A stretch of 64,000 nucleotides of DNA, taken from assembly GCA_965240325.2 (NCBI GenBank), contig OZ251235.1:558001-622000 (forward strand). The letters are read 5' to 3'. The notes under the pieces are model-generated. The model made no database searches and was not told the DNA's origin. It saw only the letters and a list, made by a program, of their open reading frames with translations. The stretch comes from Rebecca billardiae RCC1528 (lineage: Eukaryota; Protista; Haptophyta). Positions 47,464-52,695 of the stretch are shown one piece after another. The translations under genes and the position numbers were made by a program. Every line of letters begins with the position of its first letter. Position 1 is the first letter of the stretch.

Positions 47464-48061
47464 ACCCACTTCGGTCAGGATGATCAATATTGATTAATAT
47501 GATCGCTCATTCAACCCGCCACACTTTGATCCACACATACAACGTCATCTACTCATCTGATCACACTTGACGAAATATTATCATTGGCCGTCGGAGCTTT
47601 TCAACCACTCGCGTTGCACGTCGAGCTGCAAATAGCACACTTTAATCATCAAGGTCTTTAATCACACTGGGGCTCCATACTATGAGGATACGGTTAAAGC
47701 AGGGTTGAAACTCACAGCCGTACGGAATCCTTGGGAATCCGCAGTGGTTCCAGAGTCGTGCGTGCGAGTGCGTGCGAGCAAGCAAAAAGTGTGCAGCGCA
47801 GAACGGCTGTCTTGCTGGCTAATACAACGGAGTCCATTGGCTAATAGGTGGTTGATGGTTGATATCATGCGAGGCGGTACCTTCAACCGTCGTGATCTGA
47901 ATCCCCCGGGGGCTTGCCGCAGAGGCAGGTGGGCAGGGGTGCGTCGACATCCCAGCATTCCACATGCCGCGGGCGACCTGCCGTGATTGATGGTCAGGTC
48001 CAGACCACCCGTGTGGCTCGCCAGCGCGGGCCGCCGCCAGAGCCGCGGGGGGGCACGCGGC

Positions 48062-51000
48062 ATGCGCATGCCGCCGTCGGCGTTGCTCGCCGGACTCCTC
48101 TTCGCCGCATGCGCGCACGCGCAGCTGCTCCTCTCCAATCCGAGCACGGTGCTCGAGAGCATGCCGGTGGAAGCGCCCGCCGCGCACTTCTCCACGAGCG
48201 AGCACTTCCGCATCGACGGCGCCCCATTGGTGCTCTCGCCGCAGTCCGATTGGTCGCTGCACGCCTGCCCGCCCGTCTACCTCGGCGCGCAGCCGCTCGC
48301 GGGCGCCATCGTCATCCTCCACGCGCTGACGAGTTTGTACATCGGCCCGTGCAGCATCGAGCAGTACGCGCGTGCGGTTGCGCGCGAGGGCGCCGCGGCG
48401 ATCGGCGTCTTCGACGCGGGCGCGCTCAAGTTCGACCCGGTTCCGGGCTTCTGGGTCAAGTACTGGGTGCGCGGGGACTCGCGCGACTTCCGCGACCCGC
48501 CTACCGTGCACCTCACGCAGCAGGCAGCGATGCCGCTCATCGCCTCGCTGCAGCGGCAGGGTCCGCTCCGCGCGTCGCTCTCGCCGACGCCGTCGGCGTG
48601 GACCGCGCTGGGAGCGAGCTGGACGTGGGCGCTGACGAAGGCTGTGCGCGTCTTTGCGAACCTCGCCTGCCTCGAGCTCGGCGCGTGCCGGCTGTACGCG
48701 TTTGCACGCGTCGACGGTGGCCCACAGCTGAGCGCGGCCCACTCGGTGCTGGCCGTCAACCTGGTGCTGGGCGCGCTGCGCATCGTGCACATCGTCGTCG
48801 ACAACCGCTTCACGGGGCTGATGCCGCTGCACTTCGACTTCGTGCTCAACGGGCTGATCGTCGTGCTGGGCGCGAGCGGCATCGCGCTCTTCCTGCTGCA
48901 CTTCCTGACCGCGGCGGGCGTGGCGGGCGTGGCATCGCAGCGGCTCACGCGGCAGCTCAGCATCGTGCTCGTGCTCTTCATCGTGGCGATCGCCTCGTTC
49001 GACGTGCTCTCGTCCAGCCTGATGTGGCAGCGCAACGCCTACGAGCTGCTCACGTTCAAGGGTGAGCACGCCGCGCGCCGCGCCTGCGGTGACCCACCTG
49101 CGCGCGCGCGCGCGCTCCCGCGTGCGCACGCACCACCGCGCGGGCAGCTGCTCACACCTCGCGGCGCGGCGTGCCCGCGCGCTCTCTGCCCCCGCGCCTC
49201 CCCGCGTCCAGCCGCGAGCAACTACGCCGTCGTGCCCTGCGTCCTCCTCGCCCTCACGATGCTCATCGAGCGGCGCGCGAGCGTGCTCACGCGCCAGCTG
49301 CCGCCGCCGCCGCTCATCGCGCGGCTCGTGCGCAAGCTGCGCCTCCTCATCCTGCTCAGCATCGGCTCGGTGCTCGCGGGCGTGTTCATGCTGTGGGCGT
49401 TCTACAAGCCATGGCGCACGCTCGTCGGCTTCGTCGCGCAGGAGCTGCTCGGATGCACCATCGCGTACCTGGTGATCGACGCCTTCCACGCGGCCGGGCG
49501 GCCGTCGGCGCGCGGGCCGATCAAGCGCGCGATCGACCTCGTCGTCGTCGGCGTGGCCAAGGCGGCGCAGCGCGCGGGCGAGCGGCGCGAGAGGCAGCGC
49601 GTGAGCCCGGCGGGCGGCCCGGCGCGCGCCGCGATCTGCCGCGGCGACGCGTCGGCGGTGGTCTCGGTGCTCCCCGGCCGCGTCGCGTCGGCGGAGGAGG
49701 TGCTCAACCGCACGCCGGTCGACACGCACGGCGTGCCGCCTCACCTGCTGCTCGGCGTCTCGCCGCGCTTCATCCGCGAGTTCTGCTCGGCGCTGCCCAA
49801 CGTGGGCGAGCAGACGTCGTCGTACGACATCTGCGCGGAGGTCTCGCGCGTCACGAGCTCGCGCGGCTGCTCCCTCGCCGAGTCGCTGTGCTCCACGCGC
49901 ACGTTCGACGGCCGGCCGACTGTGGGCGAAGCCAACCTGTTCATCTCCCACGCGCACTCGTGCTCGTGGCTCAAGATGATGCGCGCAGTCGACGCGTTCA
50001 TCGAGCTGTACGGGCTCGACCCGACGCAGACCTTTCTCTGTGCGCGCCGCGCGCGCGCGCTCGCGCCGCGTGCGTCGCCGCCCGCGTGCGAGCGCGTGCG
50101 CGCGCGTGCCGCGCCGTGCCGCGCGGCCCCCGAGCCTGACCGCCCGGCGCCGCGCCGCCGCCCTCACGCGATGCGCAGGGCTGGACATCTTTTGCCTGCG
50201 ACAGTCGAGGCAGTCGGAGGAGGTGGTCTTCATCCCGGAGATCGAGGCGCGGGTCGCCTACGTCGTGCTGGTCCTCGACCCGTGGGACGCGCCGGTCTGC
50301 CTCACGCGCGCCTGGTGGTGCGCGCCCCGCGCCGCGCCCCGCCCCGCCCAGGGCCTAGCCGCCGTGGACGCGCCCCCGGCCAGCTGCGCCGTCGAGGTCC
50401 GTGCGCTTATGAATGCTATCGCCCCGCGCGCGGCCCACCCTCTCTCGCGCGCGCGTGCTCACCCCGCCTGCAGCCTCTACGAGATCATGCAAGTCATCGG
50501 CGTGGCCGACGACGACGATTTCCTCGGTGACAGCTCTCGGCGCGAGACGAGCGAGCGGCGCTCGACGAGCGAGAGAGAGGGCGAGGTGCACGGCACGCTG
50601 GCGTCCGCGTCGAGCGGCGTCGACCCGAGCGTGCGGGTCGAGCACGGCCTGCGCAGGTCGGAGCAGCCCAGGTCCTCCAGACCGTCAGCCATGTTGCGCA
50701 CCCTCACCGGCTTGGAGCGGAGCGGCGTCAAGTCGGCGAGGCGCCGCTCCAAGACCCACGCTGCAGAGCCCTCGGGCGTCGAGCTGGCCACGGCCGCGCA
50801 GCAGGGCGCGCAGCCGGGCGCGCAGGAGGCCGACGGCTCGATCAGGGCGACGGCGCAAAGCGAGGACGATGTCGGGCCCGGCGCCGCAGGCGCGAGCGCT
50901 CATCGGGAGGACCGGCGGCCGCAGCTCACCCTCACCGTCGCTCCCGACGAGCGCGCTCGCTTCATCGCAGCGCTCCGCGACAACCGCAAGTTTGTCGAGG

Positions 51001-51206
51001 CGGGCCTCACGTCCTTTGACGTGCGCAGAGCGAATGTGCTCGACGAGGGCGACAAGCGCCGGCTGCTCGAGCACATCGCGGTGCTCTTCGGCAGCCACGC
51101 GGAGCCAGACGAGGACCCCGTCGAGGTGGGCGTGTCCGTGTTCAACTACCAGACGCAGAAAGCCATCATTCGAGCGCTCGCAGCTGTGAGCTGGCACGTT
51201 GTATGA
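48062..51206 (+). CDS. Signal peptide + PA-like ectodomain + 7TM + cytosolic TIR/HET-like domain; join(48062..49061,49212..50039,50179..50317,50474..51206)
   Basis: Three GT-AG introns give 2700 nt (899 aa). PA-like GAIVIL..CSIEQYARAVAREGAAAIGV, seven hydrophobic segments, then LFISHAH, FLWLDIFCLRQ, VVLVLDPW, LTRAWCLYEI. Confidence 0.75.
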
Positions 51207-51668
51207 CATTTGTTTGATTGAATCTTGCATGCGCTGCCGCTGATCACAGCTGCTGACTGAGCAGTGCGGTGTCGGCCCGTCGGGTCACACTCTGACACAC
51301 TGTCACTGACGGTGACCGCACTGCGCACACCGCGCCAGTGTGCTGTCGTGACATGCTCAGTCACTGATAGTCCGAACGTTATTAATAATAATAATGCTCG
51401 GGTGACAGCCAACTCACTAATGTCAAATACTGCTGCGATATGGCTCAGTATGTATATATATATATGTGTGTAACAGCAGGTGCTGCCGCTGGTCATCATT
51501 GAGTAGGCACGCGAGAATTCAATGGGCCGGCTGAGCCTGAGAGTCCCGGCCGCCGCGCCCGGGGCCGGGGGTCGGGGCCGGACCGCGGGCAGTGCCCAGT
51601 CGCCGCATCAGCACCGCGACGAGTTATTAATACGGATATGCAGCGCATGCATGACGACGTCGACGAGA

Positions 51669-52484
51669 CTAGCAGGCAGCGGCGCCGAGCAGGGTAGTCT
51701 TTCTCCGCCGAGAGCCTGGTGCACGCGCCCGACGCCGCAGCAGCAACCGCTCGGCAAGGGCCATGCGGAGCGAGGCGCGCCGGGACAGGCCGCGGCGCCT
51801 CCGCAGCACTCCCCTGTCAAGGACAGGGACGTGACCGGGAAACGCGGCGGCTACGCGAGCCTGCGCCTTCGGCGCACGCCCCTCGTGCTGCTTCGTGTGG
51901 CGCGGCCGAGCGCAGCCCGAGCGCACTGCGGAGCCACCCGTGCTCGCGCCACACTCAAACACCCAGGTGAGCTCGCTGACCGGCTTGGGTGAAAAGTCAT
52001 CCACAAACTGGGTGCGCGCGCTTTTCGGCGCCGTGAGGTCCACCAGTGCCAGCTGCGCCTTCAGCTCGCCTCGCACACGGAGTTCGGTACGGTGCAGGTG
52101 GCGGGCGTCGTCCGCGTCGGTGTGATGCTCGCTGTCGTCGTCGGCATCACCGGCATGCGCCTGCTCCGCGGCCTCCGCACGCTCGCGGGCGAGCCGAATG
52201 AGATAGTGCTCATGCGCTCGCGACACGCGCATCGTGTGACCTCGCCAGCGGACCCCATGATACGTGCGGATCGCAAGATCGACCTTGTCGTCGTCTGCGG
52301 GGGCAACGGACACATACCCGAAGCCACGTGAGGCAGAGAGCTCGTCGTAGAATCCTCTGTCGTCCAGCGGCACTTCGCGAACGATCACGACATCGGTGAC
52401 ATCCCCGAACGGCGCGAAGCGCGCCGCGAGCTCCTCGCGTGTCGTCTGCGGTGCGAGGCCTGAGATGTGTAGCCGTGTCGCCAT
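51669..52484 (-). CDS. RRM protein resembling the nucleolar protein 8 (NOL8) N-terminus
   Basis: RNP2 RLHISGL, RFAPFGDV, RNP1 RGFGYV, YHGVRWRGHTMRVSRAHEHYLIRLARER. Confidence 0.75.
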   Translation of the reverse strand: MATRLHISGLAPQTTREELAARFAPFGDVTDVVIVREVPLDDRGFYDELSASRGFGYVSVAPADDDKVDLAIRTYHGVRWRGHTMRVSRAHEHYLIRLARERAEAAEQAHAGDADDDSEHHTDADDARHLHRTELRVRGELKAQLALVDLTAPKSARTQFVDDFSPKPVSELTWVFECGASTGGSAVRSGCARPRHTKQHEGRAPKAQARVAAAFPGHVPVLDRGVLRRRRGLSRRASLRMALAERLLLRRRARAPGSRRRKTTLLGAAAC

Positions 52485-52636
52485 TCTGTTGCGGACGACG
52501 ATGCGCCTCGTCGAGGTGCGCGCGCTCGGCAGTCGCCACTGCGGCAGGAGAGGAGACTGCGGCGGCGCAGGGCACGCGTGCGCCGTGCGTGCGCCGTGTG
52601 CAGCTGCAGCGGTCAGTGCGGGTGACGAACGATAAT

Positions 52637-52695
52637 GCCTGAGCTGTACATTGAACATGTGCGTCTCTTATTCTGATGAGTAAACTAAAACTGTA
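52637..52695 (-). mobile_element. Dispersed repeat copy E (short, with insertions)
   Basis: Reverse complement reads TACAGTTTTAGTTTACTCATCAGAATAAGAGACGCACA[TGTTCAATGT]ACAGCTCAGGC. Confidence 0.6.

Follow-up and report, generated by a model that had tools for sequence, protein, structure and literature searches.

Single-chain receptors in which a G-protein-coupled receptor (GPCR) is fused to a PIPK, INPP, AC, PDE or TKL domain have been described in oomycetes and other protists as GPCR-bigrams, with an N-terminal seven-transmembrane (7TM) part of GPCR fold and a C-terminal putative catalytic domain (PMC6033456). A gene with the same order of parts was found in a stretch of 64,000 nucleotides from the haptophyte Rebecca billardiae RCC1528 (assembly GCA_965240325.2, contig OZ251235.1, positions 558,001 to 622,000 of the forward strand), referred to here as the window, in whose own numbering all positions are given. 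The gene lies at 48062-51206 (+), has four exons and gives a spliced product of 899 aa, which very probably unites a signal peptide, a PA ectodomain, a 7TM bundle of GPCR fold and a cytosolic TIR/HET-like domain in one chain. The bigram architecture is thus present, with a catalytic role that is putative here; the accessory types of the GPCR-bigrams do not include TIR or HET, whereas the family described here has such a domain and also carries a PA ectodomain.

TIR or HET as a GPCR accessory domain was absent from the GPCR-bigram review (PMC6033456) and from a 2025 survey of GPCR families, and full-text literature searches that paired HET or TIR with haptophytes, with 7TM receptors or with protist NLR-like proteins gave no description of a PA-7TM-TIR/HET architecture. 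The original prediction, made from the DNA letters alone, likewise knew of no GPCR-enzyme fusion with a TIR/HET domain. Three known groups come close to the cytosolic domain. One is that of the TIR domains, above all the NAD+-cleaving ones of SARM1, of plant TNLs and of the bacterial ThsB, AbTir and SpbK. Fungal HET (PF06985), a remote TIR homolog (PMC10890737, PMC4986451, PMC10197012), has the same four blocks in the same order and spacing, (F/A)xSH/Y, WxDxxCxxQ, a hydrophobic strand and RxWxxxE, whereas the domain studied here has N- and C-terminal helical parts of its own, is known from algae and protists and forms the tail of a 7TM receptor. The TeTIR of TEP1/NWD2 is a divergent, extended TIR-like family with a conserved Glu, for which NADase (NAD+-cleaving) activity and cell killing were demonstrated experimentally (preprint 10.64898/2026.09.21.753143). 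Like our domain it is an extended TIR-like domain of 200-350 aa that escapes the standard TIR models; unlike it, TeTIR has an RWG loop and is in every case followed by a NACHT ATPase, whereas our family has neither and places the domain C-terminal to the 7TM bundle. Membership in TeTIR was rejected, there being no NACHT domain and no RWG in the family consensus. The parts of the protein (PA, GPCR, TIR/HET-like folds) are of known kinds and its logic has precedents in the Toll-like receptor layout and in the GPCR-bigrams, while the domain family at its core is an unnamed one.

As a whole, the protein is best explained, with a probability that we put at about one half, as a one-chain membrane receptor in which a ligand drives Glu-centred nucleotide cleavage. 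A ligand, possibly a peptide, would bind the PA/7TM part; binding would change the conformation of the receptor or cluster it, so bringing the cytosolic domains together, and NAD+ or a related nucleotide would then be split in a pocket centred on the Glu of WCLxE and lined by the conserved His, Asp and Arg. Either a signal or messenger would result, or NAD+ would be depleted and the cell would die, in the manner of TIR NADases and, it is suspected, of HET, the cell-death domain of fungal heterokaryon incompatibility proteins. TIR NADases become active on oligomerisation. In the SARM1 TIR, the BB loop contributes to oligomerisation-dependent activation (preprint 10.64898/2026.09.21.753143). Since TeTIR has been shown to be active, NADase chemistry would be plausible for a domain missed by the standard TIR models. 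Taken separately, the assignment of the tail as a Glu-dependent nucleotide hydrolase is a tentative one, and a role in defence, death or self/non-self recognition is possible, with greater doubt attached. Equally doubtful is the wider proposal of a one-component receptor class, in which a GPCR-fold sensor with a PA head would directly switch on a TIR/HET-type NAD+-cleaving death or signalling domain belonging to a pan-protist family that links fungal HET to TIR enzymes.

The cytosolic domain comprises about 260 aa, is separated from the last transmembrane helix by a linker of about 70 aa and is interrupted by a disordered insert of about 140 aa (Table 1). The four motifs on which the original prediction was built are all present in the spliced protein, FISHAH at residues 577-582, WLDIFCLRQ at 610-618, VVLVL at 638-642 and TRAWCLYE at 652-659, and with 94 homologs they are beyond chance. 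The domain is larger than the TIR core delimited there, its helical N-terminal part and its C-terminal helical part (806-899) having gone unrecognised; the latter aligns to the C-termini of the homologs and falls within the single compact model described below. The insert (665-805) has a coding-like GC content by codon position (0.71/0.63/0.91) and lacks a counterpart in most homologs, inserts in the same loop being seen in P0021, P0076 and P0081.

An alignment of 30-41 homologs gave the order of the family unit as a helical N-part with HLLLGVS..FLR.F, FVSHA and a helix, YxWxDxxCxRQ and helices, and VVLVLDPWDxPVxLTRxWCLxE, followed by a variable loop, LxLxM..ER.....AL..DR..VE..L..FD.R.A......D....I and a final FN..VR.A...A...SW. 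In the 30-sequence alignment one Gly, two Ala, the W of WxD, one Pro and the W and E of WCLxE were invariant (E in 30/30), and the H of SHA, the D of WxD, the DP of DPW and the L and R of LTR were conserved in at least 90% of the sequences. The gene has kept all of the conserved residues (H580, W610, D612, R617, D643, P644, W645, P648, R653, W655 and E659), and likewise D838, R840 and D849 in the tail. The structural model of the domain was that of the homolog P0072:32-305 (42% identical), not of the gene's own spliced sequence; it is one compact domain (pLDDT 91.4, pTM 0.88), whose elements fit the order beta-A/alpha-A/beta-B/alpha-B/beta-C/alpha-C/beta-D/alpha-D plus extra helices, with the invariant Glu in alpha-C. 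In this homolog model a flavodoxin-like beta-A to alpha-E core superposes on solved TIRs, as expected for the TIR superfamily fold.

A scan of PDB structures (48,161 chains) returned among its best 15 matches 11 TIR domains, three nucleoside 2-deoxyribosyltransferases (NDTs) and one unnamed structural-genomics entry. Foldseek gave no significant match of the domain against PDB or Swiss-Prot; its weak top matches were mostly TIR (ThsB, MAL, AbTir, SARM1, RUN1, BdTIR and plant TNLs), together with HET-E-1 (E 0.52). Further down the scan of PDB chains came other members of the same superfamily (NDTs, DprA and SEFIR), with 105-126 residues aligned at model positions ~77-274. On the sequence side, HET was the only Pfam family matched more than once, by nine of the 41 homolog domains at E<=10 (best E 0.0014), and when exon 3 (45 aa) was compared alone by language-model features, 53 of the 100 clusters nearest to it were HET. 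The family consensus FVSHA ... WxDxxCxRQ ... VVLVLDPW ... LTRxWCLxE follows the order of the blocks in the HET consensus (xxSY/H, WIDxxCIxQ, a hydrophobic strand and RxWxxQE). The exon and read-through pieces of the gene itself matched no Pfam family at E<=5 (TIR, HET, PA or other), a profile search of PDB sequences with the domain alignment gave chance matches only, and PADLOC and NCBIfam searches of the domain yielded nothing meaningful.

The domain matched over its whole ~260 residues a set of uncharacterised AlphaFold DB clusters (A0A485KUK2, W4H3W1, A9UYZ4, F2UQ03 and others; Foldseek E 1e-14 to 1e-9, TM-score 0.6-0.76), which, judging from the accession prefixes, we take to be from oomycetes, choanoflagellates, a fungus, dinoflagellates and green algae. 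In these proteins it is usually N-terminal to TPR arrays, and elsewhere it forms the C-terminal end of proteins whose names point to EGF, Apple or ephrin-receptor-like domains. Matches in the ESM Atlas (TM-score 0.73-0.79) had TPR, methyltransferase, DUF285 and HNOB as partners, and 99 of the 100 nearest clusters by language-model features (scores of the nearest 0.95-0.96) carry no Pfam family. The cytosolic domain is therefore a member of an unnamed, widespread protist family with a TIR-like core and with sequence blocks closest to fungal HET, and it belongs to neither Pfam family; the other members superpose over the whole domain and differ in their TPR or receptor-like partners, in having no PA-7TM chassis and in the lack of a curated name. 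Several of the matched proteins whose names refer to Apple, EGF or ephrin-receptor-like domains, such as A0A812MPG0, A0A812LYK9 and A0A7S1LIX5, probably from dinoflagellates by their prefixes, end in this domain, which suggests that proteins of the A0A812MPG0 type are single-pass receptor versions of the same output module.

For the N-terminal half, an AlphaFold2 model was obtained from the gene's own residues with intron 1 retained, using an alignment of 34 sequences (pLDDT 84, pTM 0.80). In it an alpha/beta ectodomain (~21-175) is followed by seven long helices, which correspond one-to-one with the seven hydrophobic segments originally listed, and the arrangement is that of a GPCR-fold 7TM bundle with a predicted outside N-terminus. 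The predicted signal peptide of the original prediction was likewise read from the sequence, as a hydrophobic core followed by AHA/Q (the slash marking the predicted cleavage) at the N-terminus, a region modelled as a low-confidence helix (5-14). The claim of a PA-like ectodomain held for the fold: Foldseek against PDB retrieved the ZNRF3/RNF43 ectodomains, the PA domain of VSR1 and a PA-carrying aminopeptidase (E ~2e-3 to 2e-2, TM-score by target 0.5-0.64), and clusters bearing Pfam PA turned up in the Atlas shape search, while the gene's own ectodomain gave no Pfam PA match at E<=5. Three of the 42 full-length paralogs did match Pfam PA (PF02225; best E 7e-06), and P0076 (20.3 bits against a cut-off of 23.9) and P0103 fell just below threshold. 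According to the titles of the matched PDB entries, ZNRF3/RNF43 bind R-spondin and VSR1 binds a cargo peptide, the PA domains there being binding modules.

No 7tm Pfam family was matched by the gene's pieces (E<=5) or by the paralogs, and the nearest named 7TM families (THH1/TOM1, GPR137, TPRA1 and Wntless) reached only 0.60-0.65 by language-model features. Proteins of 460-610 aa with a PA domain plus a 7TM bundle were found by language-model and shape searches in other eukaryotes, e.g. Endomyxa and Zoopagomycota, indicating that the PA-7TM chassis is wider than this family. Given the signal peptide and the seven helices, the PA head would face the outside of the cell or a lumen, and the tail would be cytosolic.

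When 1.84 billion representatives were searched exhaustively with phmmer, exon 1, intron 1 and exon 2 serving as the query, 94 homologs were detected (E down to 1e-52), among them the Diacronema lutheri proteins KAG8458467.1, KAG8460825.1 and the adjacent pair KAG8471001.1/KAG8471002.1, MMETSP transcripts and many metagenome or Logan open reading frames (ORFs). Homologs with the same layout, MMETSP transcripts and D. lutheri proteins included, were 640-1300 aa long. They form a diversified family of pavlovophyte-type haptophytes, with 27-49% identity to the protein of the gene. The deposited D. lutheri paralogs are hypothetical proteins with automatic names only, that of KAG8471001.1 in UniRef stating that it contains a heterokaryon incompatibility domain. 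Across 20 full-length members the mean pairwise identity was 43.5% in the TIR-like core, compared with 31% in the PA head, 29% in the C-terminal tail, 26% in the 7TM bundle and 23% in the linker, indicating that the output module is the most constrained part and that the sensor parts diverge. P0048 (~477-662) has lost the W and E of WCLxE, reading LDCLYQ at this motif, and has a changed SHA; this paralog may be catalytically dead.

P0025 (KAG8460825.1, 1069 aa) is RGS domain-containing by its automatic UniRef name; its extra segment of ~260 aa gave no Pfam RGS match even at E<=10. In the longer paralogs Pfam found neither an RGS domain nor swapped effector domains, which the original prediction had proposed to look for. 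There were no further paralogs in the 64-kb window and no viral relatives in IMG/VR in a scan with an alignment of eight sequences. Word-indexed protein searches with either half of the protein or with the domain profile gave nothing beyond the gene's own ORFs and proteins already aligned, Ala/Arg-rich words saturating the candidates.

Several points weigh against a receptor with Glu-centred nucleotide cleavage. Many TIR domains are scaffolds without enzymatic activity, and the equivalence of E659 to the TIR catalytic Glu (the position of SARM1 E642) would rest on the order of elements and the motif. Of the TIR/HET-like label given in the original prediction, the TIR fold and the HET block order stood; the Pfam TIR and TIR_2 models matched none of the 41 homolog domains at E<=10, and HET stayed below its gathering score in the homologs, the best listed match being 16.8 bits (P0081, profile positions 25-63) against 22.5. 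The biochemical activity and mode of action of HET are themselves unknown (PMC10890737). The predicted receptor may sit in endomembranes rather than at the cell surface. A search of public runs listed none, of RNA or of any other kind, for this stretch, and the ORF occurs in two public contigs that are both unspliced genomic copies (99.8% identity), colinear with the genome and with the introns included, not transcripts.

Of the other readings, the one that survives best, though it is unlikely, takes the cytosolic domain as a non-catalytic assembly module that packs homotypically or heterotypically like the TIRs of animal Toll-like and IL-1 receptors. The best structural matches include scaffold TIRs (Hydra TRR-2, MyD88, IL-18R-beta, MAL and TRAM), copies of the domain that look standalone could be partners, though many of these may be ORF fragments, and since at least one paralog (P0048) lacks the W and E of WCLxE, catalysis is not needed in every member. 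A Glu that never varies, accompanied by near-invariant His, Asp and Arg in a domain that has moved among many architectures, is nevertheless more typical of an active site, and the constraint on the TIR-like core argues in the same direction.

A lower probability was given to an endomembrane housekeeping or sorting protein, whose PA domain would bind lumenal cargo like the vacuolar sorting receptors, whose 7TM part would be of the GPR137/TOM1/TPRA1 kind and whose tail would be a non-defence enzyme processing nucleotides or nucleosides. The family is large and divergent, with adjacent or nearby paralogs in D. lutheri, which is unusual for housekeeping genes; elsewhere the domain is partnered by TPR arrays and by proteins whose names refer to receptor-type extracellular domains, and the sequence signal points to HET and not to NDT. 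A reading as a G-protein-coupled receptor of the conventional type, or as a 7TM protein that regulates G-protein signalling, with a modulating tail, is improbable too, given that the RGS-named paralog gave no Pfam RGS match at E<=10, no 7tm family model matches and the tail, where it is conserved, is TIR-like in fold.

Should the tail prove to be an active, Glu-dependent hydrolase of nucleotides under 7TM/PA control, as the preferred reading of a ligand-driven, nucleotide-cleaving receptor has it, a GPCR fold would be coupled directly to a TIR-type effector. This would be a third way of wiring TIR effectors to sensors, after Toll-like receptors and NLRs, and would give a first entry point to innate immunity, or to the recognition of self and non-self, in haptophyte algae. 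The cytosolic domain is moreover a compact, well-modelled relative of HET, whose invariant residues allow a direct test by mutagenesis of HET-like domains as enzymes.

The four-exon model was examined by frame, composition and homology. Among the GT/AG combinations tried around the three proposed introns only four kept the frame open from 48062 to 51206, and the three GT-AG introns first proposed are the combination that gives the 899 aa frame with homolog-supported junctions; as had also been noted, two motifs are split, intron 2 cutting the codon of W610 and intron 3 that of C656. Common to the three introns are GTGMGC...CAG ends, starting with GTGAGC or GTGCGC and ending with CCAG or GCAG. 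The gene region sits in surroundings of 62-83% GC, and GC by codon position was 0.68/0.48/0.94, 0.68/0.52/0.97, 0.69/0.40/0.96 and 0.71/0.51/0.88 in exons 1 to 4, compared with 0.90/0.82/0.76 in intron 1, ~0.85-0.91 in all three frames of intron 2 and 0.81/0.74/0.85 in intron 3. The introns thus lack the codon periodicity of the exons, a sharp contrast in composition that supports the model. In agreement with this, the translation of intron 1 was the sole long stretch of low confidence (pLDDT below 50) in the N-terminal model.

In a multiple alignment of the spliced model, the junctions FK/AAS, FL/WLD and RAW/CLYE were free of gaps against P0099, an MMETSP transcriptome protein of 850 aa without a counterpart of intron 1, and about 15 other homologs. 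P0006 aligned to residues 18-664 and 805-898, and P0045 to residues 509-693 (44.6% identity, BLAST E 2e-47), the latter match spanning junctions. Unspliced ORF calls among the homologs (P0013, P0014, P0018 and P0041) had insertions exactly at the junctions, at the site of intron 2 in P0013 and P0041 and at that of intron 3 in P0013 and P0014, indicating that intron positions are common to the family. An alternative donor for intron 3 at 50315 was rejected, as it would delete W655, which is invariant in the family, and so was the pair of donor 49054 and acceptor 49218, which removes residues aligned without gaps to homologs. The ends of the gene match those of the family, with a Met and a hydrophobic segment at the N-terminus and ...AAVSWHVV, the SW motif (SW-x-x-stop), at the C-terminus; homolog alignments start near the 48062 start. 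An in-frame ATG at 47990, 24 codons upstream of 48062, is a possible alternative start (47990-48061) that would add a basic N-terminal extension before the signal peptide.

Exon 2 by itself encodes TM5-TM7 and the linker together with the cytosolic domain's first 110 residues (500-609), so that this is one gene, and two separate genes, which would have overturned the original prediction, are excluded by sequence. That the gene model is an artefact, with two genes or a pseudogene joined by invented introns, is very improbable: no RNA run was listed, and introns 1 and 3, being in frame and stop-free, are not strictly needed for the open frame, but TM5-7 and the start of the cytosolic domain share an exon, the junctions are gap-free against homologs that include transcript-derived proteins, the composition of exons and introns differs sharply, and all family-conserved residues and both family ends are intact. 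Since introns 1 and 3 are multiples of three without stops, ORF callers read through them, and in this locus through intron 2 as well, and produce chimeric proteins, which hides the family from domain searches; the only database entries for the locus are the prokaryote-style, chimeric calls P0001 (839 aa) and P0002 (239 aa). For annotation this means that, in a very GC-rich genome, in-frame stop-free introns can lead to chimeric ORF calls and keep a family out of the domain databases.

Table 1. Coordinates in the window of the exons, introns and protein features of the receptor-like gene.
Feature	Position	Strand	Residues	Remarks
Exon 1	48062..49061	+	1-333 and first base of codon 334	Signal peptide, PA-like ectodomain, TM1-TM4
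Predicted signal peptide	48062..48121	+	1-20	Hydrophobic core then AHA/Q, read from sequence
PA-fold ectodomain	48122..48595	+	~21-178	Foldseek against PDB
TM1-TM4	48620..49033	+	187-217, 225-246, 256-287, 293-324	
Intron 1	49062..49211	+		150 nt; GTGAGC...CCAG; in frame, stop-free
Exon 2	49212..50039	+	334-609 and first base of codon 610	TM5-TM7, linker, start of cytosolic domain through FISHAH and helix alpha-A
TM5-TM7	49220..49480	+	337-360, 367-396, 400-423	Model helices 387-410, 417-446, 450-473 minus 50
Cytosolic TIR/HET-like domain, first part	49709..50498	+	500-664	Broken by introns 2 and 3; helical N-subdomain, beta-A FISHAH, beta-B WLD, beta-C VVLVLD, alpha-C WCLYE
Intron 2	50040..50178	+		139 nt; GTGCGC...GCAG; frame-shifting; W610 codon split
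Exon 3	50179..50317	+	Last two bases of W610 codon, 611-655, first two bases of C656 codon	
Intron 3	50318..50473	+		156 nt; GTGCGC...GCAG; in frame, stop-free; C656 codon split
Exon 4	50474..51206	+	Last base of C656 codon, 657-899	Stop codon at 51204-51206
Codon of E659	50481..50483	+	659	Invariant Glu of WCLxE, candidate catalytic residue
Ser/Arg/Glu/Ala-rich insert	50499..50921	+	665-805	Loop after alpha-C
C-terminal part of the domain	50922..51203	+	806-899	Strand beta-D LTLTV then helices

Downstream of the gene, AT-rich low-complexity tracts (TTATTAATAATAATAAT and a TATATATATATATGTGTGT microsatellite) occur at 51380-51470, ~180-260 nt past the stop codon, in a region that is otherwise very GC-rich, and one of the public contigs (L002) ends at 51429. 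The neighbouring ORF (329 aa, 51669-52658, minus strand) contains an RRM-like stretch, and a faint Pfam RRM_1 match is on record for the same gene in the locus L001.

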